This document shows, one piece after another, positions 16,953-49,266 of a stretch of DNA of 64,000 nucleotides. Made by a program: the position numbers and the translations under genes. The stretch is from Oikopleura dioica (lineage: Eukaryota > Animalia > Chordata): positions 4,278,001 to 4,342,000 of the forward strand of contig OU015567.1 of the NCBI GenBank assembly GCA_907165135.1, read 5' to 3'. Within the stretch, counting starts at the first letter, position 1. Each line of letters starts with the position of its first letter. Below the pieces are notes generated by a model. That model was not told where the DNA came from. It saw only the letters and a program-made list of their open reading frames with translations, and made no database searches.

Positions 16953-16964
16953 TCCCTCCCCTCC
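16953..16964 (-). other. Polypurine tract GGAGGGGAGGGA
   Basis: All-purine 12-mer immediately upstream of the 3' LTR on the minus strand. Confidence 0.9.
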
Positions 16965-18281: not shown

Positions 18282-18364
18282 CGCCGACTGTATTTAAAGT
18301 GATCAAAATCTGTCGATTCATCAAATTTTGAAGTTTAAAAATTTGTTGAAATTTTGAAACCATT

Positions 18365-18829
18365 ATGCAAAGAGAACTTTTGCGCAAATTTTCCGAGTTC
18401 GAGATCCCGCGTAATCAGCAAGAGGTCGATATTCGCAGTTCGTTCCGGGCCACTGGATTTACCATTCTTGGGGGCATCTCGTCGGCGGATGAGGTGATTT
18501 GCTTTTTGGAGGCAGTCTTCTGTTGGGATGACTATCACGAATCTTTTGTGATTGCAGAGGTATTGACGCACAACGAAGATGGGTCCTATTCCCGCCGGTA
18601 TCGAGTCTGCCCCTATGGTTTGGCGGATTCTGTAATTACGTCGCTTCTTCTTGGTCTTGGTGGAGCATGCTGCATCAATTTTACAAGGTCCAATTGGCAT
18701 AAGATTTTAGACTACTCCTTTTTCAAGGAACATTGCTATTGGTTCAATCTTCAGAGAGAACTGGGAAGTGATTTGATGGCTGCAACATACTCCACTGACT
18801 TGTTTCGCCAGCTTTCAGTCTACTTCTAA
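18365..18829 (+). CDS. Antisense accessory ORF (154 aa) inside the LTR element, function unknown
   Basis: ATG-initiated, globular-looking composition in otherwise AT-rich DNA, followed by AATAAA at 18905-18910. Confidence 0.65.
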   Translation: MQRELLRKFSEFEIPRNQQEVDIRSSFRATGFTILGGISSADEVICFLEAVFCWDDYHESFVIAEVLTHNEDGSYSRRYRVCPYGLADSVITSLLLGLGGACCINFTRSNWHKILDYSFFKEHCYWFNLQRELGSDLMAATYSTDLFRQLSVYF

Positions 18830-19320
18830 GCCCTCTGTTTCTTTTGTTTTTTCGTAGAATATAGAATATTTTTGAACTGGTGTTTTACAGTTATTTGCAG
18901 GAAAAATAAATTTATGCATTTGAAGGTTAACAGTACTGATTTAGAATGGGTAAGCATTGAACGGGTAGGTAGTTGTTACTGTAATTCGTGTGAGGTTAGA
19001 GAAGTGTAATTCTTGGTACAGTACTTTTTTGCATTAAGCATAGCTAAGTATGAGTGACATGATAGGTACGACTGTAATAATGTGTTAATTACTGTAATTA
19101 ACGTGAGATAAGCAATGTGAAATTTGTGGAGAATTCTGATTTTCAGGTAAATATCAAGGGTATTACTGTAGTTATTCTGGTGGTTACTAATGAGTAGATG
19201 GCGATTTACAGTGTGTTAGCAGGGTTACAGTATTTTGGCCTTTCGGCATCTTTTTTCAAAGAAAGTAGTTATAGTGGTTCTTCTTATCGGAACATCTTTT
19301 GCTTTCTTTGTGTGACTGTA

Positions 19321-24700: not shown

Positions 24701-25891
24701 CAGTGGGTTTAGCCATAATCTGAAGTTCGTGACCAATCGATATTTGTTGTTCTTTTTCTTTATGATCATCGATGGTGATGTCCATGAACTGTTGCTGTGT
24801 TCGAGTACGCCGCTCTTTACCAATTTCTCAAGAAAATCCATAATTTGGGACTCCTCGTTATTTGGGAATTTGTAAGGTCTTCTTGATTCTGGACGTCTAT
24901 TTTCCATGTTCTCATTGAATTCTAGCTTTATCAAATAGTTTTTGTTGAATCCCACATCATTCTCTTGTCTCGCGAACACAGGATGGTATTTTCTCGTTTT
25001 CTCCAGAATTTCTTCTTTTATTTCCTCTTCAACTTCTGCTTCTCTAATTTTTGATTCTATAAGTGTTGCCATGTTATTTTGCCTTATCAGATTTGTCCTT
25101 TGTCTCTTCCATGACTCGTATTCTCTTGAGTGTTGTTCTAGTTCCGGTCTTGATAACATGTCTGCTCTTATGAGAGTGTTAATTGTTTCCAATGTTGAAT
25201 TATTTTCTGCGATTTCTCCAAGAATAGTTTTTTCTTCAATGATTATCGATTTCCAGCTTTCATTTATTCCATATAATGTTTTGCTTTCTCCATTAAGTAC
25301 ATCGAATTGTATTCCGCATTTTTCCATATCTTTGCTTTTGTCGATAAGTACCTCACCTTTTATGTTTTCATTTATTTTCAGGGAAAAACTTTCTTTTGGA
25401 CCTATGATTACTGAGGTCTTGTTAGTTATTTCGTTCTTATTCTTTCTTCGAGTGGTTTTTACTACGATGGTATCTATTTCTACTATTTCTGTTATCTCGT
25501 TAATCTCTAGTGGATTGAGTTCAATATTTATTCTCGAAAAGTTAATGTCCAACATCCTTATTAATGGGTAACCTAATATACAGTCGAAATTCAAGTTGGC
25601 GTCTGTAAGAAATAGTTTCGCCTCTGGTACTTCTAGATCCAAGCACGGGAAATAAATATTAGGCGTAATGTGATCTGATATTTTATCTAAGATTTTTCCA
25701 TCTCCTCCTTTAATTATGAATTTTTCACATGAGTTTGTTATTGAACTGTGACCTATGTTTCTTCTTTTTATTAAATTAAGTGATGATCCAGAGTCAAGCA
25801 AAGCGTTTACATTTATATTTACATTTTGATTAAGTTTTATGATTATACCGATAACTGGTAGTCCTTGATTTCTAGGAGCTGTTTCGGTCAT
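21748..25891 (-). CDS. pol: Pol polyprotein (protease, RT, RNase H, integrase); two single-base frameshifts (~24340, ~23780)
   Basis: LLDSGSS (PR); VDMKSGY and YLDD (RT); VDSS, NRE, VDHKSL and DGLSR (RH); HHCC, CIDI, TDNGPEF, VERTH and a GPY motif (IN). Confidence 0.95.
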
Positions 25892-27667
25892 CTCTTGAGT
25901 TTCCTCGATGGTTGTCCTGGTTGTATTGTCTCAATGCTGGACAGATCCTCACAGGATGATTGCCTCCACAGTTATAGCATGATATTTCACGTTGCTGTTG
26001 GTTGTATCTCGGATTTCGGTTGTTTTGGTAACCTCGATTTTGAGTTCTTGGCTCAAAAGTCTCCTTTTTATTTTCTTGCTTGTTGTAATTCTGTACATTG
26101 TAGCCCTGACTACCTTTCTTCTCCCATTTCCTCGTGTTGCTATGGTTTTGCTCTCCGTTGTTGTCGAACTTCCTCTGGTTGTCATAGAACTTTCTTTCCG
26201 GCTTCCTTCCTTGATATCCGCCCCTATTATTCGGATAACTATTGTGTGGCTTCCTGTCTTGTGTGGAATTCTTTCCTTCCTGTCGATTGTTGTAATATTG
26301 GTTGCCGGTTTTACGATTTTTATTGTGCCTTTCAATCAGATTGTTCACTTGGTCGATGTTTGAATGAGACAGGAAGTCTTCGGCGCTTTTGATCAGTTGT
26401 TCACCGGAAAGGTTTGAGCTGAGTTGCGCAAATACGCGATCTGTCGTAATTTTCTTCTTAAAGTTCATATCAACGTAGCTTCTGACGGCTCTTTCGTCTG
26501 GGAATAGTTTCAAGCATTTCATTTCCATGTTCTTGTAGAATCCTCTTGGCGTGTCTTTGTGTGGATTGAATACTGTATTTTCGATGTCGCGCATTCGTGC
26601 TTCAGAGCTTTTCCTTGTTATGGTGTCGATAGCACTTTTGAACCTTTTCAGGGTTATTTTGTGATGTTTTTCCTGGTAATCCGTCAGGAGTGATATGAGA
26701 CTTTCCTTAACTCCTCTGTTGTCAATTGCTGACAAAAGGATGCTACTGATTCTTTCTTCTTCAAGTTTTTCTTTAGTGTAAAGTCGTATTTGAAATAAGC
26801 TTGATTTGTACCAGTTTGGTAGGTAATCAATCTCATCGTTCTGAGTGAATTTCGTCAGTCTAATATCTTTAATATTTCCTTTTGAATTTCCCTCTGTGTC
26901 GATGTTATTTACTTGTTCTCCTTCGATGGTTGACGGGTCATCATCGCTTTCTTCGCTTGTATAGTCTGTTTCACTGTCTGATGTTGATTGTTGCATACTA
27001 GTTAGATTCTTCAAATTACTTCCTATTTTATTTATCGCTTTTTTAACTCTTCCACTTGCTGATGACTGGTTTTGCTCTTCTTCTGCTTCGACCTTCATTT
27101 CTTCTCCTTCTTCGTCTTCTTCTTGGACAACTGATATTTCTTGTTCTTCATCATATTCTTCTTCTTCGTCAAAAAATTTGAAGTTGCTTATTTCTTCTGG
27201 GTGCTTACGCTTGTTCCAAAGAATGTTCATGTGGTTTTTCAGGGCTCTTGAGTCACATTTGGTCTCTTCATTAAAGGCTTTTATAGTTGATACGTTTTCT
27301 TTAGCGTGTTCCACTACTTCGCTCCAATCATAAATTTTCTCTTCTGTATGCTTTTTCAACCAGTCGATTGTTGGACATGTGAGAACGCAGTAAATCTCGT
27401 CTGTTTCTTCTTCACTTATTTCCTTTAGTGTGAACACCGCCGCGATCGCATGAACTTGTATTTTCGTATTGGACGAAAATCTTTTCTTGAAGTATTTTTG
27501 TATCCTTCCACATTTTGATCCGCATTTTTAATTTTTAGTGCTTTGCATAGATGGATAATGTGTCTTTCTGGAATTGTCGTTGGTTTGATTTTTATTGTAT
27601 TAATTATGTTGTAGGTACTTTCGTTATTTTCTATCCTTGTGCTTGACAGCAAGGTTTTCTCCTTCAT
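25872..27667 (-). CDS. gag: Gag; probable single frameshift between ORFs 27425-27667 and 25872-27437
   Basis: Position directly after the PBS and a C-terminal zinc knuckle CYNCGGNHPVRIC. The gag frame stays open ~90 nt into the upstream ORF. Confidence 0.85.
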
Positions 27668-27694
27668 CGTTGCACGTAGGTTCGTTTCTCTTCT

Positions 27695-27706
27695 CTTCAG
27701 TCACCA
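27695..27706 (-). other. Primer-binding site TGGTGACTGAAG (first 7 nt fit a tRNA-Trp 3' end)
   Basis: TGG start 3 nt inside the 5' LTR boundary. The tRNA identity is an inference from 7 nt only. Confidence 0.6.
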
Positions 27707-27709
27707 AGA

Positions 27710-27982
27710 TAGATAGTGTCCTTCTCTTAATGTTCTGTCTGGATGATGCCTGAGCTGCTTGGGTCTGTAAAAAGGGATCAACTGACTGTTTCCGGTTCTA
27801 TTGTTGTATTTGCTTGTGTGTAAGTGGACAGTTTGTATATAGTAATTGAATGACTGTATAACTGACTGACAGCGTTAGATGGTTGGCAGAGTCTTATATA
27901 GAGTGGTGGTTGCTATGTGTTATTCAGTAAGATGTTGTCTTGGTTACAGTTCAGAATAGATCAGAGTTGGGACACTACTGTA
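27710..27982 (-). repeat. 5' LTR (273 bp)
   Basis: 272/273 identical to the other LTR; followed by the PBS. Confidence 0.97.
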
Positions 27983-28103
27983 ACAAGACTTTTTCTCCCT
28001 TGCCGTCATTTATGCCAAGTTATTAAAAAAATATTAAAAAAATCTTGCAAAAATAGTTCTTAAATTACATGTAAAGGAAAAAGTCATCAAAAAGGCAATT
28101 TAA

Positions 28104-28762
28104 GGGGGAGGTCGACGAGAATCGGGATTTCCGTGACCAAAAATGCGGAGAAACCCGATTAGATAGGAAAATTCTGACTTTTCGGATTGAAAGAAAAGGG
28201 TTTGAAAAATTAACCGGCGAAAAGCAGAAAAAAAAAATTTTGAAAAATATTTCAAAAATTAGGGTTGAAGTGGGGGTGTCTCTTGACCAAAAAATCTCGA
28301 AAACTGAGTTTTTTTTCTTCATCAAATATAATTTATAAATAGTTTAGACCCTTAAAAATTAACCGGCGATCAAAAAATTAAGGAGTACTTTCATAAAAAA
28401 ATTTTTCTTATTGATTAAAAATATTCGATTTTCGTCAAAATATACATTTTTGCCGATTTTTTCATGGAAATTTGTGCGAAAATCACAAAGACTCGGATTT
28501 TTTTTTAAATGATTAGTCAGAAATCATTTTAAAACAATGCCTTGTGCATGATAATCAGTTTCAGATAGTTTTTGGACGAAATCACCAACCAATTATTTTC
28601 AAGAAATTTCAGTTTCGGGACTTAAAATCGAAAATTTTACATTAAAAAGTTAACAAATTGAGAAAAAGCTAGGGACCAAAAATACTCCTTTTCTATCGAG
28701 GAATCCAAAAATATAATCAAAATTTTAAAAAGGTGAAAAAAAATTTCTCGACGACCTCCCCC
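28104..28762. mobile_element. TTAA-flanked non-autonomous DNA element with GG...CC termini (Kolobok-like)
   Basis: TTAA on both sides; TIR GGGGGAGGTCGACGAGAA / TTTCTCGACGACCTCCCCC. A second TIR element (GGGGGTAGAACTAG) abuts it at 28767-29148. Confidence 0.75.
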
Positions 28763-29968
28763 TTAAGGGGGTAGAACTAGATTTTGGGAAAAACCGTGAT
28801 TTTCGGGAGGCACTTTAAATAAGAAAAACCTGTTTTTACTTATGATTACGCAATTTCCTCAAAAACTGGCTGAACTATCTTAAAATGAAATTTAAAAAAT
28901 TTGGCTAGTCACGTGACTCGATAAATTTGACGACGCGAATACGCTAAAATTGCGATATTTGAAGAGGTGGGTTGACGTTTCGCTCTCTAGCGCCAAAATG
29001 TGTTGACGAAAAAAAATTTTAAGAAAAATGTTGTTAGATCTAAGTTTGTTCTATCAACAGCCGAAGAGAGAATTTGAAAATCTAAGCTCTCCTGGCTTTG
29101 AGCGCCGGTCTAGAATCGGCTATTTTCGAAAAACCTAGTTCTACCCCCCAAAAAAGAGGACTTTTTTTACTTTCTCATCCAAGGCTTGACATCCAAGCTA
29201 ATTAATACCTGACTCAGATTTCTACACAGATCGCTGAGCCCATAATCAGAACAAACAATATCTTTTTTATAAGCTTGCTTTTCGCAAGTCATTCTATTCA
29301 GATGAATTTGTGGCCTTTTCTCTTCAAAAAGGGTACGCTGTCAAAGAAAAACGACAAAAAAATCAAACAAGGAAATTTTAAAAGAGCAAATCTGTCTCAA
29401 AAAAACAAGAAAGAAAAAATGTTGAGAGAAAATATTTTTCATTTATTCAAAAAAATATTTTATCTACTAGTACTTCTCGTTGGTTTCTTACTTCTTTTTC
29501 AAAACTCAAAATATCTTAATCCTTTGAAAATTGAGTTAACCTCAAACAAGGTAGTAAGCTTTCAACGGTTGAATAGAGCTAAATCAATCAAATAATAAAA
29601 TTTTTGTTTGGGTCTTCTTTATTTTCGCATTGGATTCTCATTTCAATGCAGCGATCAGAGTGTGCACAAAAAATGCAAGAAATCAGAGCTTTTTTCCCCA
29701 ACAGTTTTTGAAGGACAAAAATTACCTTATTTTCATCGGGCTAGCGTATTTACGCTTTAGCGGCTATTCCCATTTTTAATTTTTTACATTATATATTTTA
29801 TAATATATTATACATTAAACAATTCAGGTAGAAAACAGGGACTTCTAATGTTCAGTTATCTTTGAATTATCTTGTCATTCTCTCTATTATTTTATATACT
29901 TATCGCAAATATTATCGCTGCAGTCTATGTTATAACCGCATTGATACACTCATCTTCTGAGATCTTGA

Positions 29969-32885
29969 TCTAGAGGTCTAGAGAAATTAGCTGAAGTTAC
30001 CCAACCGTTCAAAGAAATAATTGTTGCACTAAAACCCGATAATCCTAGAAGATCGCCTTTAGCTTCTGCCTACCTCAAACATACTTTTGCACTTGAGGAA
30101 AGGCTCCTATGGCTCGTGAATCCTGCCATTAGATTTACTAAGAAAAGGAAGGTTATAGCTAGGTTAAGGAGATGTATTTATCAAATGAAATTACTAACGG
30201 CGAAAATTAGACAACTTGATAAAAAGATGTTAACGCTTGATAATGATACCATCTCCACAATAATTACGCAGCAACAAGCGTGGAAGTTGGCCAAAAGATG
30301 GATTAAAAACCCCACGGCGGGATCGTTCAAAAAATCTATCAACGGAATTGCTGACGACCTTTTAGCGTTGCAGCTCAACACCGTGCCGCCAAAAGAGAAC
30401 GTGCGAACAGAGTCCACCCAATTCTCCCCGACGCAGAGAAATTCAGGATTCCAAAGGTCAGTTTTAGAAAAATTGGCCCATACCCGGCGTTCATCAACTT
30501 CTATAAAAGTTCGAAAACTAAAACTATGGACTTAAGAGGTGTATCGCGTGGCATGGCGGAGAAATTACCTCTCCAAGCGTTCTCGAACTTGGTCCTCGAG
30601 CCATTCAAGGATGGTACTTCCAAAGGTAAATTTATTAGCGATTGGATTGAGAATAAAGTTACGCCTTTACTGAAGCCTAATGGCTCCCCCAGACCTATTA
30701 CGATTACGCCTTGGCCTCTCGGGCTCCTAGAAAAGGCTTATAGTGAAGCCTTTATCATTTTCATGGAAGATAAAAAAATAGTTCCTTCGCAGCAGTATGG
30801 TTTTCGTAAATACCGTAGCTGCGGCGGAGCGGCTTTTGAAGCAGCGTTTGCCGTAAACTGCCTTAGCGGCGGCGAAAACAAGGAAGGTAGGTCGCAGACC
30901 TTCCCTTGTACGGGCATGATCAGCTGCGATGCCAAAAATGCGTTCGGGGTGGTCCCTCATGATAAGTTCCTAGAGGCACTTAGGGGGATCGCCTCGAACG
31001 CATTTGTAGAATTTATTGCCGCGTATCTGGTACGTAGCTTTAGGGCGGTCCTGAACGGATTCGTCAGTGATAAAAAGGTGCTTCCCCCTTGGGGACTGCC
31101 GCAAGGCAGTTCCCTCTCGCCTCCCTTTTATATTTTCTATTGTTCGACCTTTAACAATAGTTTAGTAGTCGATCGGGAGGATTCAAGCACGAGGATGGAT
31201 CAAGAAGTTGACGATCTGGTCAATGAGCAAAGCTGTAATCGAGAAGATCATCAGCTTCTAGAGCTCTCTCTAGCTTCAGGTGACTTGCTTATGAAAATGG
31301 GACGCAGAAAATGCGATCACCAAATCAGCATGTCCACGGGCATCTCACTCTCGTTTGCAGATGATTACATCCTTCTAGTGAATGGCTTCACCATCTCCAG
31401 CACTCTCAGATCTTTGGCGAGCTCTGCGAACTTGGTCCTGGATGAAATGCAAATATCCGGCATCAAAACGGCGCCGCACAAAAGCAACTTGATTATTTTT
31501 GGTAAGTCCGAACCAATCAGTCAAGACGCTCAAGTGATTAATAGCTGGTTCACAAATGATAAGGGGGAAAAGGGTATCATCATGGATGGTACTTTTGTAA
31601 AGTCTTCGGACAAAACTAAATACCTGGGCATTTGGGTGGAAAATAAGAACGGTCGACTCTCTTTTGATCTACACCACAAGGTCACGAGAGGTCGATTCAA
31701 AGCCATATCAGAGCAGATAAGTGTTATTTTTCATACAATGCCACTAAATATGCTTGCAAACATTGTCAGAGCGCAAATGGGCGGAGTCCTCCTTCACGGG
31801 AGTGACTACATTAACCCACCTGACCGAATGACTCTTGATAGTATGCAAAAGATCTACTCGAACACGCTCTGGCAAAAGAGGTCTCTGCCCTACTTTCTCC
31901 TAGACAAAAGTTGGAGTTGAAAGATAAAGACAGGCTAGCCTTTGAGGCTTTTAAAATGCGTTTTTACGACAAATACTTCAACTTTTGTCCTGAGGAAAAG
32001 TATTGGGCAGTCTTTCTAGCTGGGCAAATCCCTTTGCATTTCATGATAATGAAGCAAGGGATTATGAGCATTTATAAAAGTTTTCGATATCAGATACCGG
32101 AGCTACCAGCCAAATTGGTTAGGTTAGGACTTATGATCTGCGATCGTTTCGGCGATCCAATTTGTCCCTTACCGGAGGTCTTTTTATCAGAACGACTTAA
32201 AAATCAATTTATGAATAACTCCAGATTCGGTAAAAATAGAGTCTCCGGAATTCTGCTTAGAAAAGAACTTGAACTAATATTTCTGGCACAAGATTTCTAC
32301 CATCGTTTTGTCGATCTATTGGACACTGACACAATCGAAATTAGGTTCATCGTTCCCAAAAAGGACCTGGAAAACCGTTTTAAGATTGATAAAAAAGCTT
32401 GGCCTTGGTATCTAGCTGAGGCATTCAATAGTCTGCCGAATTACACGAGGAAAATGTTCGTTAATTTCAACTTTCCAAGTGTACTCAAAGACACAATCAA
32501 GAACACACATTTCCACGAAGGTTACACTTTCAAGTGTGATGCCTGTACTGGGCCAGTCAATGTATTATTCGAGGAAGGTATCAGACTTCCCTTAGTACTA
32601 AACAGCCCGGACGATTGGGACCTAAACAGTTATGACTACAACACAAGGAACCAACTTGCGGCGGGTACTGCTGCACTTATTGCATGGTTCTCAATGTCAA
32701 AAATTGACCGCCTAAGAATTGAATCGCCTCTGCTTTTCCACCAATTTTATATCCAAATGTGTAAAATTTCTCTACAGAAGGGCTTTGGTGGAATAATAAG
32801 TGGTCTTCTTTACGATAAGAATTTTAGGCATGAGATTAGGGAAATTATCTGGATTTTTGATAAGACAGCGTTTAAAGACCATTGA
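29969..32885 (+). CDS. LINE-type reverse transcriptase ORF (endonuclease end missing); two -1 frameshifts (~30.4 kb, ~31910)
   Basis: QQYGFRK, DAKNAFGVVPH, GLPQGSSLSP, FADD, KYLGI, thumb-like EAFNSLP and a late H...CxxC. The N-terminal part resembles the APE-RT linker, and the frame is open to within 14 nt of the insertion boundary. Confidence 0.9.
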
Positions 32886-32937
32886 CCCAAACCGCTCTAC
32901 CCTAGGCACTCTCCGATAAATTCCGACTAAAGACAAA

Positions 32938-34296
32938 ATGGCTAACCCATTCTTTTAGCGACGAGTTTTGGCGCTCAAAGACTTTTGGCGGTCAAACAAT
33001 CAATCGCGCCCATTTTCTGCGATGAAATTGCCCTGTTTTCGACACGGACAAAAACGACCTCGCTCTGGCCGCCTTTCATCCTAGCCAGTCGTTTCTTCAC
33101 GAAAATGCTCGACGATAAACCGATTACTCCCTCCGGCCTAATTGACTCTAAACCCTGTCCACCTCCGAGCATGAACATGTTCTGCGAATCTGACTGTCGG
33201 CTGATTGATCGCTATGCAGCCCGTTACGATGAATTCTTTCAAAATGGGTTAGAAGTCGTCAGATGGATTCTCGGAGAGCCAATATTCAAAAGGTTCCTGG
33301 TAGGAAAATCTGAAGACGAGACTCGAAAATGGGTTGAGTCATGGAAAAAGGCCTGATCTTCAAACTCCACGACCCGACAATTGGCTTGCCAGCATGGTCC
33401 TATCTCAACGAAGCATGTGACTCCCTTCTAGGGAGCATCCTGTTGAGAGATGAACCGAAGGGAGGTTACACACCTTCCTTTGACGCTCGGCTCGCAAAAA
33501 TTGCTGGTAAACTCCTCTGCGCAACATATGAGTGTGGAGAAGGCGCCCAGTTAATCGATCTCGCGCTGCTGTCGAATGACTATCAGCTACTGGACGTTCT
33601 GCATGCAATGTGGCAACTGAACCCAATCCGCTGGAAGACAGAACAATCGATTCTTCTGCGTCCATCCGGCTGGACTTCGCTAGATGCGATAAACAGCGCG
33701 GGTTTGGTAGCACAAGCAATATCCATTCATTCTGAAGTATCCGGACTAGCGGTTGAAGCAATGGCATGCATAGCCTGTCACCCAACCTCATACGAAATAA
33801 TGAAATGCCGGGATTTGGCAGAATACTCCTTGGCAGACAGCGGACTCAAGAATGCCTCCAAGAAGTTAGCAGAAAATGGGCTTGTTAAGCCAAAAAACGA
33901 GCTCGCGACAATCTCCAAGTTCCTCGATATCGGAACTACGCAATGTAAAGCAGTTTCGGATGTTCTCGAGGAAAATCTTGGGATCACGTTATATGACCTT
34001 ATTTCCGAAGCAATCACCTGTACGGCAAAGAACGCTTGTTCCTGTGGCAAAGTCATCGCAACCGCGGCGAAAGCCGACGAGGACTACATGGGGATGGCCT
34101 TCTTCACCGTCAAAAATGGCTCACTGAAGTGGTGCATGACATTTATGTAAATGAAGAAAATGGGAAGCTTTTTAAGCTAAACCTTCTTCAAAAAGTAACG
34201 GAGCGTAAGTGCAAGCTACTTCATATACACTGCATGGTTACTAAACTCACCAAAAGCTACAGCTTCCAAAATCCTTCGGGCCGATTGTCCAATTAA
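32938..34296 (+). CDS. Cargo ORF 1, intronless, ~450 aa after repairing three homopolymer deletions; unknown function
   Basis: ATG 52 nt after the RT stop. ORFs 32985-33356, 33341-34150 and 34036-34296 overlap in successive -1 frames, and each join can be made at a C or A run. Confidence 0.65.
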
Positions 34297-34334
34297 AAAT
34301 AGAAGCGATAAATCAAGCTTCCATTTATATAATA

Positions 34335-34963
34335 ATGGATCTTGCCAAAAACTGCGTCAAAATCGCCCCTCCAGTAACTCACGCCGATTTTGTCATTAAA
34401 AACGTAGCAAAAAAGCACAGCCCGTCCTCAGACAAACCTATTACTCTTCAATCTTTCCCTGTAGTCAGACAGAATTGGTTTTCATAACGCCGCAGAACTT
34501 GAATAAAGAACTTGAAAGAGTTCGGGAAATTTCTAAGCTAAATTTGCAATCAGCACTTAAGAAAATCAATGAATCTGCGCGTGATTATGATTTCCAGATA
34601 TACCAGACTTACTCATGTCTCTCAATCTTTTATGATCATCAATTGAACCAAGTGGCAGCGGATCTCCTCTCAGCGCCAGACCTAAACGGGTTGGCGAATC
34701 GGGAGGGATACTCGGCCTCAGACTTTCGGCATATTGATTTTCATAAGTTAGCAACTGATCTTAAAAAGGCAAACAATAAAACCTGCCTTGGAGCATCTAA
34801 ATTTAATCAGCCCTTTTCAGAACCGATCTGTGAACCAAGGGAGGTCACAGACCTTCATCGGTTCCTGGAAAGTCACTGTAACGCCGATGCAAATCTATCC
34901 CAAGAGCCAGAAGAATGCAATCTTTACGATTCTCTCCCTTCACTCGATCTGGTTCAAGACTAA
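34335..34963 (+). CDS. Cargo ORF 2, intronless, ~210 aa after one repair; unknown function
   Basis: ATG 38 nt after the ORF 1 stop; -1 join into ORF 34475-34963; followed by a pyrimidine-rich UTR and AATAAAATAAA at 35306-35316. Confidence 0.6.
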
Positions 34964-35537
34964 CAAAGACCCTTTGAATAGCTGCCTTCGTTAACTCGTA
35001 AGTCATCTGCTGTTCTTTCATCTCAAGTGGTTATTCTTCCCCTATAAAGTCTACTCGTTTGCGCTTTTATAAAGCGTCGACAACTCCGCAAGACACCTTT
35101 TCAGCGTATTTATATTAAAAATCCACCGTGTTATCTCCTTGGATTACACTCATTCTCGCGTTTTGTTATAAAAATCTCCTTCCGTTAATACAATCTCTTC
35201 TTTTCTACTCTAGTTCTCCTCAGCTTTATCATGCCCTGCTTTTAATCGTTTTGTTTACTACACAATCACACCGTTTACTAGATTCATACTCTCCTGTTCT
35301 TGCTCAATAAAATAAAACTTAATGATCAAGCGATTTCGCTGACTGGAATTGTTGGATTACGCAACAAAAACTAGTCATCTTGATAAGTCGTTGACAAATC
35401 TTATTTCCAAGTTAGAAGTTTATTTAAAATTTGGAAGCAGAACAGAGGCAAAATTGCAAAAACAGGAATCTTAAGTGTGATGTTCACTTGGGAAGTTATG
35501 TTTCTCCAAGTAAAGTCGTGGTAAAACTAGCCTTAGC

Positions 35538-38500
35538 TTAGTTTGGTATGGTAAGTGTGGGCCCTTCCTTAGAGTCGACACCAGTTGTCTCCAGGAGTAA
35601 GTATCGGGCACTCAAAGCCAGTGGGATATCGTGTGCGAGTGATATTAAATAACTTTGTCCAGAGCTAGAGTAGTAGAAGGTATTTGTAGCGTTGTAGAGA
35701 CGTGCACGTTTCTTTCGTTTACCGGATCCAGGCTTTACGTAGAAGCCAGCGACGACGCAGCAGAAAAGCGGCAATAGTCGCTGTAAGTCCATAAAACTCC
35801 AACCCAATTCTTCCAATTGCTCCAGAAGAGTTGAGCGAGGCACAGAGTCTTTATATCTTCCCCCAGGAGTGTACGCTGGACCAAGATCCCCTATAATTCG
35901 TTCAGTAAATAGTGAGCCCCTATTTCTCGACTAAACTGTAAGGATACCTACCTCTCACAAGATCTGCCAAGGTCTGTTTATGCAGCTGCCCATGGGTAGT
36001 TTCGATGTCGGGGAACAGGTGATCCCACTGGGATTGTTTCTATTTTCAATTCAATGAGAATCAATGGAGGATTAAATCTTTTACCTGTAGTCCTCCAGCC
36101 TCTGCTTCCCTGACTTTTAATTGCTGCAGTTCGGATAGCAGAGTGCGCATTGCGTCCTGGTTAGCCTGACAAGAGTTATCCGTACATAAGGGCACGGTAC
36201 ATCCGCGCACTTTGGTCGGGTATAGGTGAGGCGAAAGGCCATAGCGAGTGAAGTCGACAAACTGAGTCTCGGAACGGTGCAATGCTTGAACGAAGGATCG
36301 TAGGGCGGATGAGCGGGAATCCCATGACATGCGAAGTTGAAATGGATTCTGACCACTTGGCAGAGCCATACGGAAACAATTAGCCTCGCGGAGATACTCA
36401 GAGTTGAAAAGAAGTGGCCCTTCGTCAGTCAGTTTGGTGATGCGGTCAGAAAGAGCTGTTTGAAAGTCGGAAATATTGCTAAAATAAAAGTTAGAAGCTT
36501 AAAAACTTTGCTATTGGCGAAGGTAAGGGCTTGACCTACCTTTCAGTTATGCTGCTAATGGTAAAATCCGATTCGTAAGCAGTAGGGAGAAGTCGTTGTG
36601 GCACGGGTGAAGTTGAATAGCGAGTTGGGAACAATTCGTTTAATGTAGATTTCTCGCTCGAGCTGTACTCAGGGCTGGAGACAATCATAGCGCGGACGAA
36701 ATGGCAAAAAGCGGAAACTTGGTCATCAGTAATGTTGGTCAATCGGAGATACAGATCGCCGTTTGAAGGAGAATACATTACTTCGAATCCAAAATCAGCT
36801 AGTAGTCCAGCTAATCGGTTAAGGTCGCGGCAATACCGAATAAACTCCTAAGAAATATTAATAGGGATCAGGTTTAACAAGATGCAAAATTAAAATGTAA
36901 TCAAGCTTAAGTACCTCAGCATTCTGTTCATTCTTCATCACATCTGGGAAATGCAGGGACAAATATTCACCGAATACGGGTAAAAGCGGGCTGATACCGC
37001 ACACAATGTTGCCTGTCGTCATCCCTGCCTTTTTCAACGATTCATGAAGGGGGGCAGCCAAGATATTGTGACAATGAACACTCCGTTCCATGGGGATCAA
37101 TCTTGAGTTCAAATGAGCAAGGCCAGAAAATGAAACAGTCTCGCGTGCAAGGCGAAGCTGGGAGGTAGCTTGAAGATGGTCGAGTCGGGTTGCTATGACG
37201 TGGAGTTGAGTAAGACTGGGCTTAAATTAGGATTACTTGGAGAAAAACCTTGCTTACGCTGAGTTGTAGACGCCACACATGATGGTCGAGTGGCGCATTA
37301 AGCAAGCTCCACTCAATTGGCAAGGCGGATAGGTGCAAGTTGCAACAGGGCCTCCTGCTCGCTGATAGTTGTTTGATGGGTCAGTTGAACACCAGGTGAT
37401 CGAATCGCTTTGGAGAGCATACTGATTCACGACCTCAGTTTGTAGTTGATAGAGAGGATGTTGATAAAAGAAGTATCCAAGAGCCTTTAAAAAGTGCTAA
37501 TAAGATGTCGCTAGGAAGGTAATAGACCTACCTTGCGCAAGAGATTGAGAGCGGACCCACCGGTGAAGCCGGCGAAATGGAGATTGTGCGCCTCAACTTG
37601 TAACTGGAGATCCGTCAGCGGGGAAATCATTAAGATATGATTCAAGTAATCCGTTGACATAAATAACTTCTGACAAAAGATTGAGGCCCCCAAGAAATCC
37701 ATTCGGTCATGTAAAGCACTTAGCTTTGTAGTGTAGAGAGCGGATACGTCGCCTTGAATGGTAGGATTGTATGAATCCAAATCGGTAATCTGTAAAATGT
37801 CAGCCGGGATCGCGAGCAATTGATTGTTTAAGATCTTTTGGTAGGCGAGAACAGAGGCTCTTTTCAACTTTTCGGTTAGAGTCTCAGCCTGAGGATGGCT
37901 TGGGGTCTGGGCATGTTCTCGTTTTATACGCGATTGGGCTGATTCAACTGTTGCGTCCAATTGCTGGATCAGTGGATTTTCATGAAGTCCAGATGAGCCT
38001 GAGAAGCAGAGAATAGTGTCGTTGGTTGCCACCAGACCATACTCTGGCTTGTTAGTAATCTGTTCTTCATCATCCATGAGGGTTGTCAAGGGGTGATTGG
38101 CCAAAATGTCGGGCTTAAACGAAATCGGTGCTGCTTCCGGGATATTACTTTCGGCTGTAACTGATTGAAGCCGGTTCTCCAATAAATCGAGTAGCAGAGT
38201 TGAGCTTGCTGCTTGATGCCCAGGACGGACTGCAGGTAGAGGGCCGCTGTTTTCATGGACGGAAGTCGAGTGCCTAGTCGCTCTTGCTGGATCTCGGCGG
38301 AGGATGCTGGTGACGGGAATGTCCGTAGTAGGAAGCGCGTCAGTGGTTGAAATTCCGGTCTGAGTGGTGAGTAAGCTCAGCAGAGCGTTCTCATCTAAAA
38401 CATGTCCGTCAAAAGAGGAAATACTGAGCAGAAATTAAAAGAAAGGTAGGTCACTTACCTTCCTCAATTAATCTGAAAACTCGGGGACGAGATTGTCCAT

Positions 38501-41149
38501 CAGCAGTGAAGACCATGTAGAGTCGACCACCACGTCGGATAGTAGCATTCATTAAGGAAGATGAATCGCTGCTGCCATTGTCTGAAGGAGATGGTGGCGT
38601 GGAGTGATCTCGAGCACTTGACTCGTCATTTGCTTGAGGCTCCGGGGCATCATTACCGGGGGGAGAATTACAGGGCGGATTTTGTTGCGAACTGTTTTCT
38701 TCAGTGATTTCCTGGGTGGCTTGTTGAGCAGCTTACTCGCGAGCCCTTGCGGCTCTTCTTTCCGTAATATACTCTTCGTACAGTCGGTGAAGGTCAGACA
38801 GATCCTCTTCGCGGGGAATATAGAATGGAGATTCGACAGCAGTTATGGACAACTCGGAAATATTCTTGACTCGGTCGGGATCTACTTTTGAGTTGAGACA
38901 CTTGCTATGGGGCTATAAACTAAAGTACCTTGGAGGGTCAAAGCTTGCAGAAAGTCCACAACGTCTTCTGTTTCCAGTTTGGTTGGGGATAGTTCATAAA
39001 TGCTGTGGATGATTCCTAATTCCGTCAAGACTTCTCGAGCCTCGGAGGAAAGGTTCAATACCAGGCGGGAAACGCGAGGAATCGCAGTTTGCTCGGTTGG
39101 TTCGGGAGAGTCGAGATCAGCAGGGTTCAAAGTCCTATCGAACTCTGAGGCAGTTGTGCACTGTTGCTGAGAAACATGTATGGCGGATAAAAGCACTTGC
39201 TGATAAGCGCTTGTAAATGATGGTGGTCTAATGACCTTTCGCAAGCCAGTAATATAACAAGTGCTGATGTCGTTAGTACACCCTTTGATTTGAAACGGTC
39301 GCAAGCTAAATAAAAAGTAATTAACGGAAGGGCAAAATCACAGCAGGAAGGTCGAGGACCTACCTGGTCTCTTGACGTTTGATACATCTGGCGTGAGCGA
39401 TCACGTCGGAATTTGTTGCTGGCTGTAAAGTTTGCTGCAAAAATGCGTCAATGGTGCGTGCGAAAACCAAGAGCAGGTCATTCACCAGTTGTGAATAGGT
39501 GCGTGATAAGCGCTCTTGAACCATGTCCTCGGTGTCTTCATTACGGGTTATCATTGCTGCCATGATCCTCTGGATTGTGCTCAGGACCAATGAGTGGAAG
39601 TAGCGGCGACCGTCGTGAACAAGGTTACCGTAAAGGCAAAACATCGAGTATAGTAGGCGCTCCACATCCGTTGCAGTGAACTTCTGGCACTGAGTGGTGT
39701 AATAAATCGCCCACTGGCCAAAAACAAGCTGAAAAGAGGGGATTGATCCTGGAAGTCTTTAAAATTAAAATTATAATTAAAAATGAATTAGGGAATTTCA
39801 ATTGTGTTAAAGTGTCAAAATTTTAAAGCTCTGTAAGCTTTATAATTTACCTGAAAGAAAATCTCTACGAAAATTCGCACGGAGGTCGAATCAGGGGCGC
39901 TGGGTTTCCATCCGGGAGGCAGACATGTTCTTTTCCCAAACCTGTCGAACTTAGTCTCGCCAAGCAAGGTTGGTAATCCATCTCCCTTCGTAGAGGAGAT
40001 GATCTTGTCGCCAAGGGAGACGGTCCTATCCTTGGTGGAATGGGAGTCGCGAACCTGTGCGTATAGGTCTTCGACAACAGCCAGTGAAGGCGTCACGAAG
40101 TTATCAGAGTCGTCCGACTCGCTGGCGTCGGTGGAAGCTGACTCTTCTTCTAAGAGGAGATTAATTAAAGCCCGAAAACTAGTACTATTCTTCTCTAAAT
40201 TAAAGTTATCTAAGAAAAATTTTGTCCAACGACAGATAGGGACAAACGAAAAATTAATTATTACAAATTTTACCAATAATTATATTGTACCTAGACTATC
40301 AAAATTTCACTAACCTTGAGCCTCAGGGGTCCTTCAAACTTTCCTCGTTTGGAACGTGTTACGCGTTGGTTAGGACCAGGTACTGGTCGTGGCTGCCTAC
40401 GTCGTCGGTTCCTCTTGCGGGGAGTTGGGGTCGAAATTGATGATAGCCGAAGGGTACGTATAGGAGTACTCTCAGTGACCTCTTGAAAGGAGGGAATACT
40501 CTTTTCGCAAGTAGGTCGAGGATCGGAGATGGGCTTGAATGGGGCTAGGGCCTCACCAGTCGGTTCATCAACGTCCATCTCTTGCTCGTCTTCGGAAGGG
40601 GTTTGCGGACGGCCGGAAACTGGAGGAGCAATGAGAGCCGTAATCTGCTCCTCGGTGTATTCAGCCAAAACCTGAATACAGTTAGTTTCCGTGAAATCTG
40701 TATTATAGTTTGGTTAGATTGTACTACTACTTCTCTTGAAGAATAGGTAGGTCTCGGACCTTCCTCTACTTTAGAAACTTTCTCATGTCACTTTCCGAAA
40801 TTGTGACTGGCTTCAATAGAAGCAAGTAGCGGCTCAGAAATTACTATACCAGGAGAAACAAGCTAAGTGATCCTGGATTAGAAAACTCAAGAAAAATTCA
40901 TGAAAATACCAAAATAGGCAAGTGTCATACTTCAAATAAAACAGGGTTGCGCATGAAATGATAAATCCTGATTGAAGTTGAACCCGGATCCAAAATGGCG
41001 TTGACAAAACTTACGGAATAAGGAGATGACACATCCAATGGGTCGGAGTGCGGGTACACTGCGACCAGTCGTGCGGTCCTTCGTGGTACTTGAAACCCTT
41101 CAAGGCCAAATTCCAGAGTTTCTTCGTCGTTTGGGAGTTGGGGGTCCAT
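35538..41149 (-). CDS. Antisense multi-exon cargo gene(s) inside the LINE-type element; roughly 1,400-1,600 aa if a single gene; unknown function
   Basis: GT-AG introns joining ORF-track frames exactly in phase: 40672-40930, 39306-39363, 37485-37531, 37216-37257, 36848-36914, 36479-36539 and 36040-36084. Further introns at ~39757-39850, 38424-38458 and 35920-35951 need a nearby 1-nt repair. One in-frame TAA at 38733-38735; the junction near 40.2-40.3 kb is unresolved; AATAAA on the minus strand at 35419-35424. Confidence 0.8.
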
Positions 41150-41779
41150 GACGTCCGGATAAATTAGCGCTCTGCTAATCGGGATGCCAAAAAATGAACT
41201 GACTCGAGTTTTTGGGAAATCGGACTTGTAAACAGATCCTCAACAACATTCTAGAAACGAGGTCACGTGATGGAGACTGGTCCATGGGGTTCTGATTAAA
41301 TCCAGCCCTTGACCCTGGAAATGCAAACTTGAGCATCTCAATAATAACCCATTCTAGAGAAAAACCTGTCTATTTTTATTTTATTTATTTTTCAAAATAC
41401 CCAAATAGATTCTAAAAAATCTTTGATTTTTAAGTTTATCTTAACTTTGCAATACCTTCTCTGCAAAATTGCAGCTACATTGGACAAGGCCCTTGAATGC
41501 GGATTTGAAGGTAGGTAAGGTACCTACCTTCATCTCTACTCCTCTTGGGCCAGCAGAATAGAAGAAGATGAATCAATCCAATCAACTGGGTACCGCGCAT
41601 ACTTTTCTCCCGCTTGGCTGGATGATCCTACTCTTCTGCCTTTCTACGCAAGCATATTTTTCATTCATTCGCTATGAAATCATTATTTTTATATTTCTTT
41701 ATTTCTTTTGTTTCTTGTATGTTCTTTCTTTTCACTTGCACTGTGTTACAGATTATTGTTCTTCTTACAATTATCTTTG

Positions 41780-41807
41780 AATAAATAATCAGAAAAAAAA
41801 AAAAAAA
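41780..41807 (+). terminator. Polyadenylation signal and retroposed poly(A) tail
   Basis: AATAAA at 41780-41785 and A15 at 41793-41807, directly joined to the resumed host sequence. Confidence 0.85.
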
Positions 41808-42536
41808 TGTGAGTCTATATCAAATGCGCTATGAAATACCGAGATCTTATTTTTCGATTGGTCTCCGTTTCCCAAAATCGCCGTTTGCCCAAATTGAGGA
41901 AAGGGCAACTTGGGCAAAAGGCGACTTTGGCGAACGAGACCACTCTTCTTTTTCAACTTACATATAATAACTGCAATTATCTGTCAGATCATTTTACATA
42001 AAAGTTTCCGCCGAAAAAATTTTTTGTAGTGATACAAACGACTAGTTTTTGAAACAAGCAATTTAAAAAAAATAGACATTTGAATGAATAATTGCTAACA
42101 CAACTTCTAATTTGTCAGAAAATGAAAGAAGATGAAATTTTCTAGCATCAGATGAAGGATTCAACGCGGGGATCAATCAACAGAGCCAGAGGAAAGTTCC
42201 AGAACACGAGATCAAAGAAGAAATTTCACGACTAGAGTGCGACTAGAGGCAGGAGAGACTAGAGGAGGCAATTAAACTGTACAATTTGCGCACATTTATT
42301 TTTTGATTGAAGGCGTCTTACGAGACGGTAATGAGAGGAGCTCAGCCTGTCGTAAGAGCTGCCCCCTATATCGATAGTATCACATGCTCTCTAGCACCGA
42401 GAAGATTATGAAGCGTAAAAATAACAGTTCCAGAAAGCTATATAAATCGAGATCCCTGAACCTTTCAGCACAGACAATAACAGTCAGTTTTAAAAAAAGA
42501 GCCTTTTCAAAGGAAATCTTTTTAATCCGGTCAAAA

Positions 42537-43031
42537 ATGATGAAATCAATGCTCTTTGGTCTCTTCGCCGTCGGATCCGCTTCTGTCGACCATTATGGCA
42601 AGATCCGAATGCCTCGATTTGAAAAACTGGTCGGTTCGGAGGTCGATTTGGCTGGCCCGATCGCCGTTGACTCGGAAAAAGACTGTACTGATCTCTGCCG
42701 CGTTGCATCGTTCTTTGCCAGCCCGACACGACAATACGATGCCAACTGTGATTTTGCGGATATCTACGCTGACGGACAATGCTCTCTCTCTGAAATTCCA
42801 ACATTGCAAGAATTCATCGTCGACAAAATTGGCTCCCGTGCACTTTCCTGCCGCGCTCTTTGCTCCTTCATGTCCGACTGCATGGTAGTTCAGACCGAGT
42901 CTAAAATAACGCGACGAATGACCTCCCGAACTTGCTCCTTTTTCAACGGATACGTCGAGGTTCAACGAACAAGATTTCCCGTCGAAGTCGAGATGAAACA
43001 GACGATGTTTGACAAATACATCCAAATGTGA
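42537..43031 (+). CDS. Secreted 164-aa PAN/apple-like protein (copy 2)
   Basis: Near-identical to 16044-16538. The true start is the MMKSML ATG at 42537, not the 42384 start in the ORF track. Confidence 0.7.
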   Translation: MMKSMLFGLFAVGSASVDHYGKIRMPRFEKLVGSEVDLAGPIAVDSEKDCTDLCRVASFFASPTRQYDANCDFADIYADGQCSLSEIPTLQEFIVDKIGSRALSCRALCSFMSDCMVVQTESKITRRMTSRTCSFFNGYVEVQRTRFPVEVEMKQTMFDKYIQM

Positions 43032-43303
43032 ACTGTTAACCATATTCCCCCTGTTCTCTTCTCTTTCTTCTGAATTAACATATATAAATCTGAAAATAAT
43101 ATTTGCCAAATTAACCGTGTTTACACAAATTTTTTTCTCTCTATTTTGCCGTCATTGATGCCAAGTTAATAAAATAAAAAAATCTCATAAAAATCACTTC
43201 TAAAAATGTCATTTCGGGCGATTTCGGCCCAAAGAAGAGGACTTTTTTAAATTCTATCATCCAAGGCTCGCCATCCAAGGAGGCTTATTAATGTAAGCTT
43301 TAA

Positions 43304-48454: not shown

Positions 48455-49266
48455 TAGGCTTATAAGATGAAAATTCGGCCCTTTTTTCTAACTTAGTTTA
48501 GGGGTCGTATGACACAGTTTTAGAAAGCCCAGAGCCTAAGCTTTCATTTGAGCACCATATCAAGGGGTCTGGGTCATGCCCGCAAGGCAATTTATTGGAC
48601 CGGAAGTTCCGAAATCGGCCCAAGAACTCTTCAATAGGATTTTTGAGTGCCGGTAGTCATTCGAAATGGTTCGAGAATAGGTGCGTTAGAAAGCTCAGCG
48701 TCTGAGCTTTCTATAGAGCCAATAAAATACTGCTGCCATGCCACCTAGTGGCCACTAGGAGCGCTAGAAACTCGAATTCTGCCCTGGAAAAGGGATTTTT
48801 ACACTAGAAAATGTTCATTTGGTCGAAATTTCAGGCTTCTATTTTTGAGTAAAGGCTTCTTAGCCCTGGCATGGCGTTTAACGGTGGTCAAACCGTCCGG
48901 TTGAGACGAAGATTATTGCGCTTCCTCCCTAAAAATCCTCAAAGGTCACTATTCTAGCGCCTCTAGCGGCCACTAGGTGACAGGGCAGCAGTATTTTATT
49001 GGCTTTTTAGAAAGCTCAGACGCTGGGCTTTCTAACGCACCTACTCTCAAGCCATTTGGAGCCAGTACCGGCAACCAAAAATTCGATTGAAGAGTTTTAG
49101 TGCCAATTTCGGAACTTCCGGTGCCATGAATTGCCCTGCGGGCATGACCCAGACCACTCGATATGGGGCTCAAATGAAAGCTTATCTTCTGGGCTTTCAG
49201 AATATGTGTCATATGACCCCTCAACTGAGCTAGAAAAAGTGGCCAAATTTTTATCTAATAAGCCTA
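48455..49266. mobile_element. 812-bp non-autonomous hAT-like fold-back element
   Basis: 8-bp TSD CTCATCCC (48447-48454 and 49267-49274), TAGGCTTAT...ATAAGCCTA ends and ~315-bp imperfect inverted arms. Confidence 0.85.

Follow-up and report, generated by a model that had tools for sequence, protein, structure and literature searches.

The insert and its genes

The window, by which we mean the whole 64,000-nucleotide stretch analysed here, is internal to chromosome 2 (chr2) of Oikopleura dioica OKI2018_I69, on a chromosome arm at 4.3 Mb of 16.2 Mb. In this region an 11.85-kb block (29955/29962 to 41806) splits a sequence that has an uninterrupted paralogue at about position 14790. The left flank (29618-29961) aligns with 14405-14796 at 83% identity and the right flank (41807-41962) aligns with 14790-14946 at 89% identity, so that the paralogue is continuous across the point where the window holds 11.85 kb. 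Overall, both flanks are 83-95% identical to the empty paralogue, and the junctions match the paralogous site base for base. The alignments at both sides bear out the initial annotation, which had described an insert of this size in a host sequence with an intact copy at 14781-14798. The features of the locus are given below, where "second copy" stands for a locus about 0.6 Mb away on chr2 (L002), which holds CAG5110494.1.

14781-14798, + strand: paralogue of the target site, uninterrupted; the two sites occupy separate units of a local tandem duplication
29955-29961, + strand: left junction TTCTGAG, from the alignment with the empty paralogue
29962-41807, + strand: inserted unit, very probably a 5'-truncated LINE copy (remaining ORF2, ORF3, convergent antisense gene, 3' terminus and poly(A)), delimited by the empty paralogous site and by tblastx colinearity with the second copy
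29969-32885, + strand: ORF2 remnant in three frames, recognised by RVT_1, motifs and 52-60% amino acid identity to an uninterrupted 892-aa ORF of the second copy
29969-30400, + strand: ORF2 piece, linker after the endonuclease
30397-31908, + strand: ORF2 piece, reverse transcriptase (RT) domain
31905-32882, + strand: ORF2 piece, C-terminal domain with a conserved HxH...CxxC motif; stop codon at 32883-32885
32952-34147, + strand: ORF3, conserved sense accessory gene with a core of about 390 aa; tblastn identity of 39-40% to residues 25-411 of ORF3 in the second copy
34148-35300, + strand: non-conserved tail and spacer past the ORF3 core; coding-looking run at 34400-34960 with no counterpart in the second copy
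35306-35311, + strand: internal sense poly(A) signal AATAAA, 3' of ORF3; about 100 nt separate it from the antisense gene's own signal
35419-35424, - strand: poly(A) signal of the antisense gene (TTTATT on the + strand)
35538-41149, - strand: antisense gene CAG5110698.1, 1408 aa and 14 exons in the GenBank model; ATG at 41149-41147, stop codon at 35540-35538
41150-41792: 3' region of the element, being the sense 3' UTR and, on the other strand, the presumed promoter or upstream region of the antisense gene
41793-41807, + strand: poly(A) tail A15 (A17 at the equivalent point of the second copy)

The insert ends in AATAAA (41780-41785), seven bases and A15 (41793-41807), as the initial annotation had read it, and the final A may be derived from the target. 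Seven bases of the empty site (14790-14796) align on both sides of the insert. On the left the match is 5/7, TTCTGAG at the junction against ATGTGAG, which is present once in the empty paralogue and again directly after the poly(A). The junctions therefore possibly carry a target-site duplication, at best a degenerate one of 7 bp. Self-comparison of the window revealed no further copies of the insert and no terminal repeats, long or inverted, linking its two ends.

The ORF2 remnant is broken by two frameshifts, near 30390-30397 and near 31905, each in an A4 run. Pfam RVT_1 matches the window at 30526-31917 (E 8.5e-12), and the LINE-type RT motifs QxGFRxxRS, NAFG, GLPQGSSLSP, FADD and YLGI are present. 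The RT is highly divergent, and a PDB sequence search, profile query included, gave no match to it. Aligned with a 655-aa endonuclease ORF in the second copy, the insert begins at a point that corresponds to residue 590, in the linker past the endonuclease domain. The window copy, being 5'-truncated, lacks this domain. The initial annotation had placed the start inside an ORF2-like RT frame; it falls in ORF2 indeed, in the linker rather than in the RT domain.

Downstream of RT, two sense ORFs had been proposed. They proved to be a single ORF3 (32952-34147), whose frame shifts within an A5 run at 33345-33349 and which is continuous over 621 aa in the second copy, and the coding-looking sequence at 34139-34960 is not conserved between copies. 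ORF3 has no match in Pfam, NCBIfam or PDB, and an AlphaFold2 model of its core was unusable (mean pLDDT 38.1). The paired internal poly(A) signals that follow ORF3 are arranged in the same way in the second copy.

On the opposite strand, the large spliced gene of the initial annotation was confirmed by GT-AG introns, phase-consistent exons, a poly(A) signal of its own and its annotation in GenBank. The introns are mostly about 42-67 nt long, with three longer ones near the 5' end of the model. The reading frame contains an in-frame TAA (38735-38733), bypassed in the GenBank model by a 48-nt intron that is missing from the homologue. An antisense exon searched against 1.84 billion representative proteins retrieved two relatives, itself and CAG5110494.1 (27% identical, same chromosome), and no stand-alone homologue or host paralogue of the gene was found in this set. 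A Pseudomonas Ig-like protein (P0003, E 8e-4) was rejected as spurious, with six short matching stretches only. Sequence searches of Pfam, NCBIfam and PDB gave nothing credible for the antisense protein, the upstream ORF of the second copy or the N-terminal extension, and the AlphaFold2 model of the antisense C-terminal domain was likewise unusable (mean pLDDT 39.6). In word-indexed protein searches, neither the RT piece nor ORF3 nor full-length P0001 brought up any protein other than the query. Exact-sequence look-ups of the window ORFs and of the endonuclease and RT ORFs of the second copy returned no record, and metagenome scans with the RT and antisense C-terminal alignments gave no confirmed relatives.

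The last 40 or so nucleotides before the tail are conserved with the second copy and end in AATAAAYAATCAG. Both 3' ends share a terminal motif, AATAAA-N7-A15 in the window and AATAAA-N7-A17 in the second copy. No conserved RNA fold was found at the 3' terminus, and no Rfam family, hammerhead included, was found in 29000-42500. A match to the terminal motif at 1664-1683 (- strand) was considered fortuitous, having neither a poly(A) end nor upstream similarity.

A second, anciently diverged copy

The comparison of the family is made on two copies, the window insert and the locus holding CAG5110494.1, where this gene is convergent with an RVT_1 gene (E 2.3e-10). By tblastx, window positions 29978-41807 are colinear with positions 4236-16128 of the second element; there is no similarity beyond, and the flanks are unrelated. 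Order and orientation are the same in both, with RT followed by ORF3, the antisense gene, and then the same 3' terminus and poly(A). Between the two copies, amino acid identity amounts to 52-60% in RT, about 41% in ORF3 and 27-38% in the antisense gene. The homology of the antisense proteins spans almost their whole length, and seven introns of the gene occupy identical alignment columns. This layout in so divergent a copy indicates that the forward and antisense genes are part of the element and did not come along by chance.

Nucleotide identities at codon positions 1/2/3 are 0.64/0.74/0.39 for RT, 0.52/0.65/0.29 for ORF3 and 0.47/0.58/0.32 for the antisense gene (876 codons). Third positions are saturated between the copies, and these values show both that the lineages are old and that all three genes have been under coding constraint. 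The pure A15 and A17 tails, together with window flanks 83-95% identical to the paralogue, indicate insertions far younger than the split of the lineages. From the shared architecture, the saturated third positions and the unrelated flanks, we conclude that two long-separated lineages each transposed the whole module.

The second copy extends further at its 5' side. It has uninterrupted frames of 892 aa (RT), 655 aa (endonuclease) and 621 aa (ORF3), with one frameshift at the APE/RT junction. In the window copy, homology places three frameshifts, and the antisense gene has one in-frame stop. All four placeable frameshifts of the two copies lie in A4-A5 runs. Pfam matches to the endonuclease ORF are weak (Exo_endo_phos_2, E 1.2e-3, 19.2 bits for a cut-off of 27.4; Exo_endo_phos, E 0.024), and by eye the motifs ANLG, LSE, GGDFN and IDH (N, E, D-N, D-H) are found in the expected order. 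A further ORF tightly abuts upstream and is still open at the edge of the locus. No target-site duplication was found within this locus, whose edge falls short of the 5' end of the element. The additional, putative APE-like endonuclease ORF and the open upstream ORF give the element a full length of at least 13.6 kb, in line with the more than 13 kb that had been guessed from the window, and probably of more than 16 kb.

Nature and origin of the unit

We conclude that, with high probability, the insert belongs to an autonomous APE-type LINE family of O. dioica that has kept its accessory genes, and is a 5'-truncated copy of it, dead on arrival. Pieced together from the two copies, the conserved unit comprises ORF2 (N-terminal extension, putative APE-like endonuclease, RT and C-terminal domain), ORF3, the convergent antisense gene and an AATAAA-bearing 3' terminus. 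The antisense gene of the family is predicted to encode about 1400-1450 aa and to contain some 13 short spliceosomal introns, with a poly(A) signal and, presumably, a promoter region of its own. The data support a stable gene-carrying family, the reading favoured from the outset, in that the second copy carries RT, ORF3, the antisense gene and the same terminus; this support does not draw on the earlier arguments from composition and missing MITEs. The initial annotation had named beforehand the outcome that would speak for a one-off event, namely a single-copy cargo and other RT copies ending near 33 or 35.3 kb. The opposite was found, the only other homologue of the cargo gene in the protein libraries adjoining a homologous RT and ORF3.

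Several other routes to the same arrangement were weighed. An ordinary LINE ending near 33-35.3 kb could have read into about 6-9 kb of host DNA including a gene on the opposite strand, in a one-off, long 3' transduction. The cargo does look host-like, with its convergent pair, whose separate poly(A) signals are some 100 nt from each other, and its short introns of the O. dioica type, and the internal sense AATAAA after ORF3 might be the end of a shorter element. We nevertheless hold such a transduction to be highly improbable, since a second element with only 27-60% protein identity is homologous block by block, with order and orientation retained, and has the same terminal motif and poly(A), and the search of 1.84 billion representatives found no stand-alone homologue of the antisense gene. 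The saturated divergence also excludes the second copy as the parental host locus of the window copy, and L1 transductions seldom exceed 1-3 kb (PMC6431247). Both loci are on chr2, about 0.6 Mb apart, and O. dioica genomes are heavily rearranged (PMC11067885), which could suggest an old segmental duplication, at the DNA level, of a region with a dead LINE fragment beside two host genes. This is very unlikely, because the similarity ends exactly at the poly(A) tails with unrelated flanks beyond, the tails are pure A15 and A17 despite saturated third positions, and the window copy both interrupts a site with an empty paralogue 83-95% identical to it and is 5'-truncated relative to the second copy. 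We give least credence of all to an artefact of the Nanopore-based assembly, by which a LINE fragment was fused to an unrelated gene region. The frameshifts in A4-A5 runs, all four of the placeable ones, are typical of Nanopore consensus errors and make some base-level error plausible, but the same joined architecture is found at two loci of very different sequence, and both junctions match the paralogous empty site base for base.

The origin of the cargo may have been an ancient capture, now fixed, in which 3' read-through in the common ancestor once took up the antisense gene, and perhaps ORF3, from the host; the cargo would since have been a selfish hitch-hiker, or useful to the host rather than to the element. 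Such an origin is compatible with the main explanation of the present-day unit. In its favour, the gene is built like a host gene, with introns and with a promoter side and a poly(A) signal of its own; the internal sense AATAAA may mark a former 3' end; and no domain ties the cargo to known transposon proteins. On the other hand, coding constraint held through third-position saturation, in otherwise short-lived copies, is hard to explain if the cargo is useless to the element, and no host paralogue was found in the protein libraries. We regard this capture as a real possibility, though a rather doubtful one.

Two further classes of element were discarded. An LTR retrotransposon with an antisense ORF is contradicted by the lack of terminal direct repeats and of any rve or RNase H match in the insert, and a Penelope-like Terminon by the LINE-type RT motifs, the poly(A) end, the absence of an Rfam hammerhead and the internal chromosomal position. 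Flanking LTRs and an integrase both occur in a neighbouring element at 16670-27982.

For the gene-carrying LINE family, we infer the following cycle. The sense transcript would read past the internal poly(A) signal after ORF3 and through the complement of the antisense gene, to be polyadenylated at the terminal signal, and target-primed reverse transcription from the poly(A) tail would then copy this RNA into the genome. The antisense gene would be expressed separately from every DNA copy. Its introns would survive each round because the sense RNA carries them as their reverse complement, invisible to the spliceosome. ORF3 and the antisense protein would serve the element, and one might speculate on a role in RNP assembly, in nuclear steps or in countering host silencing. 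A bolder proposal, for and against which we are evenly balanced, is that of a LINE of 16-20 kb with four to five genes, including the sense ORF3, probably a very large upstream ORF, and a permanent, self-promoted convergent gene of about 14 exons. Its antisense protein would be needed for, or would regulate, the element's own retrotransposition, and its introns would be protected by orientation. Such a 16-20-kb unit would be the largest and most gene-rich non-LTR retrotransposon known to us.

Relation to known retroelements

LINEs are usually 4-8 kb long and are viewed as minimal elements that hold one or two ORFs and end in a short 3' UTR. The O. dioica element resembles APE-type LINEs, taken as a class, in its LINE RT motifs, a putative APE-like endonuclease N-terminal to the RT in the fuller copy, AATAAA and poly(A), 5' truncation and lack of terminal repeats. 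It differs from them in its size of at least 13.6 kb, a conserved ORF3 after ORF2, a conserved convergent gene in the 3' part, with about 14 exons and a product of about 1400 aa, and, probably, a large upstream ORF. No LINE known to us has a multi-exon, conserved antisense gene as large as this. Antisense ORFs of natural retroelements, such as primate L1 ORF0, HTLV-1 HBZ and those of some plant Ty3/gypsy elements, are small or come from LTR elements or retroviruses. In the engineered indicator cassettes of L1 assays, an antisense, intron-bearing gene with its own promoter keeps its intron through the RNA step. The O. dioica element, with a backward gene and its introns inside a retroelement, would be their natural counterpart if the bolder proposal holds.

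Among the APE-type LINEs is Odin, a non-LTR family reported from Oikopleura (PMC4122922, PMC8008620). According to the OKI2018_I69 paper, Odin is nearly absent from that assembly. As in L1 3' transduction, sequence past a first poly(A) signal would be carried on a read-through polyadenylated RNA. L1 transductions are one-off events, differ between copies and usually span less than 1-3 kb (PMC6431247), whereas here about 6.5 kb past the internal signal, ending in a conserved terminus, has kept its coding sequence and the positions of its introns in two anciently diverged lineages. The Terminons, giant Penelope-like retroelements of bdelloid rotifers (PMC6431247), are likewise RT retroelements, of tens of kb, with several accessory ORFs and copies often 5'-truncated. 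Their RT is of the Penelope/Athena type, they carry hammerhead ribozyme motifs and they attach to telomeres, in contrast to the LINE-type RT, putative APE-like nuclease and poly(A) end of the O. dioica element. In Adineta vaga, intron-containing host genes are dispersed by Penelope elements, an antisense template having been noted as explaining intron retention (PMC3846280). There too a retroelement moves a gene with its introns kept. The A. vaga genes are single host genes moved in trans between Penelope terminal repeats, and the O. dioica gene would be a permanent antisense component of a LINE. A 2019 review of giant eukaryotic transposons covers giant LTR elements, endogenous retroviruses and Penelope-like Terminons and includes no giant non-LTR element (PMC6431247).

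The setting of this element is the most compact free-living animal genome, in which LINEs had been considered almost gone. Its ORFs are now annotated as ordinary genes, which matters for larvacean gene counts and repeat libraries. If our interpretation is true, RNAs of at least 12-16 kb are within the routine reach of target-primed reverse transcription, retroelements have a simple natural route to carry spliced genes, and two orphan proteins are conserved only within a transposon, their function being open to testing.

Insertion site and neighbouring repeats

The 11.85-kb insert (29955/29962-41806) was proposed in the initial annotation to split a host sequence of which an uninterrupted paralogue lies elsewhere in the window, and self-comparison of the window confirmed this. 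The left arm (29618-29961) aligned with 14405-14796 at 83% identity, the right arm (41807-41962) with 14790-14946 at 89% and, farther right, 42084-43069 with 15597-16576 at 95%. The flanks left of 29955-29961 and right of 41807 are thus a diverged copy of the continuous sequence 14405-14946, so that the paralogue can be used as an empty site. The same self-comparison revealed no other insert-like sequence within the window. At its 3' end the insert carries AATAAA (41780-41785), followed by seven bases and A15. Seven bases of the empty site can be aligned to both sides of the insert, the left copy agreeing at only 5/7, which makes a target duplication possible, albeit unproven. The whole block was inserted as a single unit with a poly(A) end and is 5'-truncated.

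The site lies in a unit of ~3.9 kb duplicated in tandem (14405-16669 plus 27983-29617, versus 29618-29961 plus 41807 to about 44665; 83-95% identity). Each duplicate was struck by a different large retroelement, and the 'empty site' of the LINE is available for this reason. The other unit is occupied by an 11.3-kb LTR retrotransposon (16670-27982, minus strand) whose 283-bp LTRs (16670-16952 and 27700-27982) share 98.6% identity and which has RT, RNase H and integrase matches. Three ORFs downstream of its integrase (17309-21751) had no Pfam match, and its layout fits that of the env-carrying Tor (Ty3/gypsy) elements of Oikopleura. Directly 3' of the LINE insertion site lies a palindromic, MITE-like segment of ~85 bp (41856-41940; paralogue 14845-14929), which in the paralogue matches its own reverse complement at 74%. 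The window further contains a 55-bp unit repeated 7.8 times in tandem at 98% identity (46344-46775), and two inverted-repeat pairs of 85% identity, one of 315 bp (48455-48769 / 48952-49266) and one of about 100 bp (62232-62333 / 62990-63091), either of which may mark the termini of a small DNA transposon.

Coding content of the window copy

Pfam detected RVT_1 at 30526-31917 (E 8.5e-12), and the RT translation contains the usual non-LTR motifs.

Features of the window copy (window coordinates, strand, description)
29969-30400, 30397-31908, 31905-32882; +; ORF2 remnant in three reading frames
32952-34147; +; coding region after ORF2 (ORF3)
34139-34960; +; coding-looking stretch, open in shifting frames, unconserved
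35306; sense; internal poly(A) signal AATAAA
35419-35424; -; poly(A) signal of the antisense gene
41149 to 35538; -; antisense gene, canonical GT-AG introns mostly of 42-67 nt, phase-consistent exon junctions

The spread of ORF2 over three frames indicates two frameshifts in this copy. The frameshifts placed by homology, here and in L002, a second locus on the same chromosome (chr2) with a divergent copy of the LINE, all fall within homopolymers of four or five A (window, near 30390-30397 and 31905 and at 33345-33349; L002, about 20650). Either real slippage mutations or errors of the Nanopore consensus could account for them; since the assembly is Nanopore-based, some are possibly of the latter kind, and the frameshifts may overstate how damaged the copies are. 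The window copy starts at a point corresponding to residue 590 in the 655-aa endonuclease ORF of L002. It therefore lacks the endonuclease and all upstream parts, which makes further movement of its own impossible.

When the largest antisense exon was compared with 1.84 billion representative proteins in a full HMMER scan, three matches were obtained. Two are O. dioica OKI2018_I69 chr2 proteins, CAG5110698.1 (g5074; 100%, 1408 aa), the GenBank product of the window gene, and CAG5110494.1 (g4893; 27% identity, 1266 aa); the third, a bacterial protein, was judged spurious. Neither ORF3 nor the antisense protein of the window matched Pfam, NCBIfam or PDB sequences. The antisense gene contains an in-frame TAA (38735-38733), which the GenBank g5074 model excises by a 48-nt intron that has no equivalent in the homologue; the homologue residues matching it lie in a low-complexity region and are probably coding. 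The antisense protein has a mostly helical predicted structure, acidic and Ser/Pro-rich stretches, basic clusters and no transmembrane segment, and carries a conserved cysteine motif in its C-terminal third, which is its best-conserved part.

The fuller copy at L002

L002 lies at 3.71-3.74 Mb of OU015567.1, the window copy at about 4.30-4.33 Mb. At L002 the gene for CAG5110494.1 is convergent with a gene bearing an RVT_1 match, and the locus has four tightly packed ORFs on the sense strand of the element.

Sense-strand ORFs at L002 (in order)
22591-25090; -; upstream ORF, 832 codons, open at the locus edge; in GenBank the end of a 1899-aa product
655-aa ORF; overlaps the upstream ORF by 17 nt, ATG to stop
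RT ORF; 892 aa
ORF3; 621 aa, begins 24 nt after the RT ORF

The stop-free runs of the first two ORFs overlap by 32 nt. The 1899-aa product gave only faint Kelch matches, and the GC content of the upstream ORF (0.45-0.49) is like that of the element, compared with 0.34-0.39 in the 3' flank. From its abutting arrangement, strand and composition, this ORF probably belongs to the element, of which it may be the first gene. Pfam matches of the 655-aa ORF to the endonuclease/exonuclease/phosphatase fold were weak and below threshold (E 1.2e-3 and 0.024); the expected catalytic motifs are present in order, after an N-terminal extension of about 290 residues. L002 has its endonuclease and RT ORFs in two frames, whereas a single frame crosses the same junction in the window, so that the ancestral ORF2 was probably continuous, at about 1550 aa. 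Measured from the beginning of this ancestral-type ORF2 to the poly(A), L002 spans 13.6 kb, bearing out the earlier expectation of a full length above 13 kb, and the unit including the putative upstream ORF measures at least 16.1 kb.

In tblastx comparisons the insert was colinear with L002 from window 29978 to 41807 (L002 element positions 4236 to 16128), with zero similarity outside these limits. Both elements end in AATAAAYAATCAG (AATAAA(T/C)AATCAG), then A15 or A17, then unrelated flanks. In both, a sense AATAAA follows ORF3 at about 100 nt from the antisense poly(A) signal, and seven introns of the antisense gene occupy identical alignment columns. The DNA could be aligned in the RT only (63% identity). 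Nothing in the C-terminal third of the L002 ORF3 corresponds to the window stretch at 34139-34960; conservation between the lineages thus does not extend to the end of ORF3.

Identity between the window copy and L002 (region; amino acids; nucleotides at codon positions 1/2/3)
RT; 57-60%; 0.64/0.74/0.39
ORF2 C-terminal domain; 52%
ORF3; about 40%; 0.52/0.65/0.29
Antisense; 27% (N-terminal 800 aa), 38% (C-terminal 360 aa); 0.47/0.58/0.32 (876 codons)

GenBank annotates the element ORFs as ordinary genes (window 30227-34150, +, and 35538-41149, -; L002 10001-15090 and 15962-20280). The sense models (539 aa and 927 aa) are chimeras of RT pieces spliced to ORF3 pieces, and the g4893 model skips, within a 747-nt 'intron', two homologous antisense exons (L002 13039-13317 and 13368-13655; 44-46% identity).

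Persistence, mobilisation and known systems

As judged from the codon positions, the RT, ORF3 and antisense blocks are each under coding constraint in their own frame. The near-saturated third positions place the two copies in lineages separated long ago, whereas the pure poly(A) tails and the window duplication arms, still 83-95% identical, indicate that the whole module transposed far later than the lineage split. That each lineage transposed the entire module excludes a one-off 3' transduction as well as an old segmental duplication. Two lineages have kept the same gene order and orientation, the capacity to code, the positions of introns, the internal poly(A) signals and the terminus, and the independent second copy supports the initial preference for a stable family with accessory genes.

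By established LINE biology, the sense RNA would ignore the internal signal, read across the complement of the antisense gene, be polyadenylated at the terminal signal and be reverse-transcribed at the nicked target. The antisense introns would be kept because they are reverse-complemented in this RNA. The internal signal could yield a shorter mRNA for translation. Our working guess is that ORF3 and the antisense protein both serve the element. Alternatively, the antisense gene may derive from the host, taken up in a single read-through event and then kept, an account of its origin that is compatible with the present-day unit.

The element has the features of an APE-type LINE, except that its endonuclease match is weak and the candidate target duplication agrees at only 5/7. 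Odin is a non-LTR family described from Oikopleura (PMC4122922); LINE/Odin is almost absent from OKI2018_I69, in which unclassified sequences make up 44% of repeats (PMC8008620). Penelope elements are able to spread host genes together with their introns, and an antisense template would, according to the authors, explain intron retention (PMC3846280). A literature search, with the likeliest sources outside its coverage, turned up no LINE reported to carry a conserved antisense gene of several exons. Giant eukaryotic transposons named in a review are giant Gypsy-like elements, foamy-like endogenous retroviruses and Terminons, non-LTR elements appearing there with short 3' transductions only (PMC6431247). 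If the upstream ORF of L002 is a very large first gene, the Oikopleura element would be 16-20 kb long.
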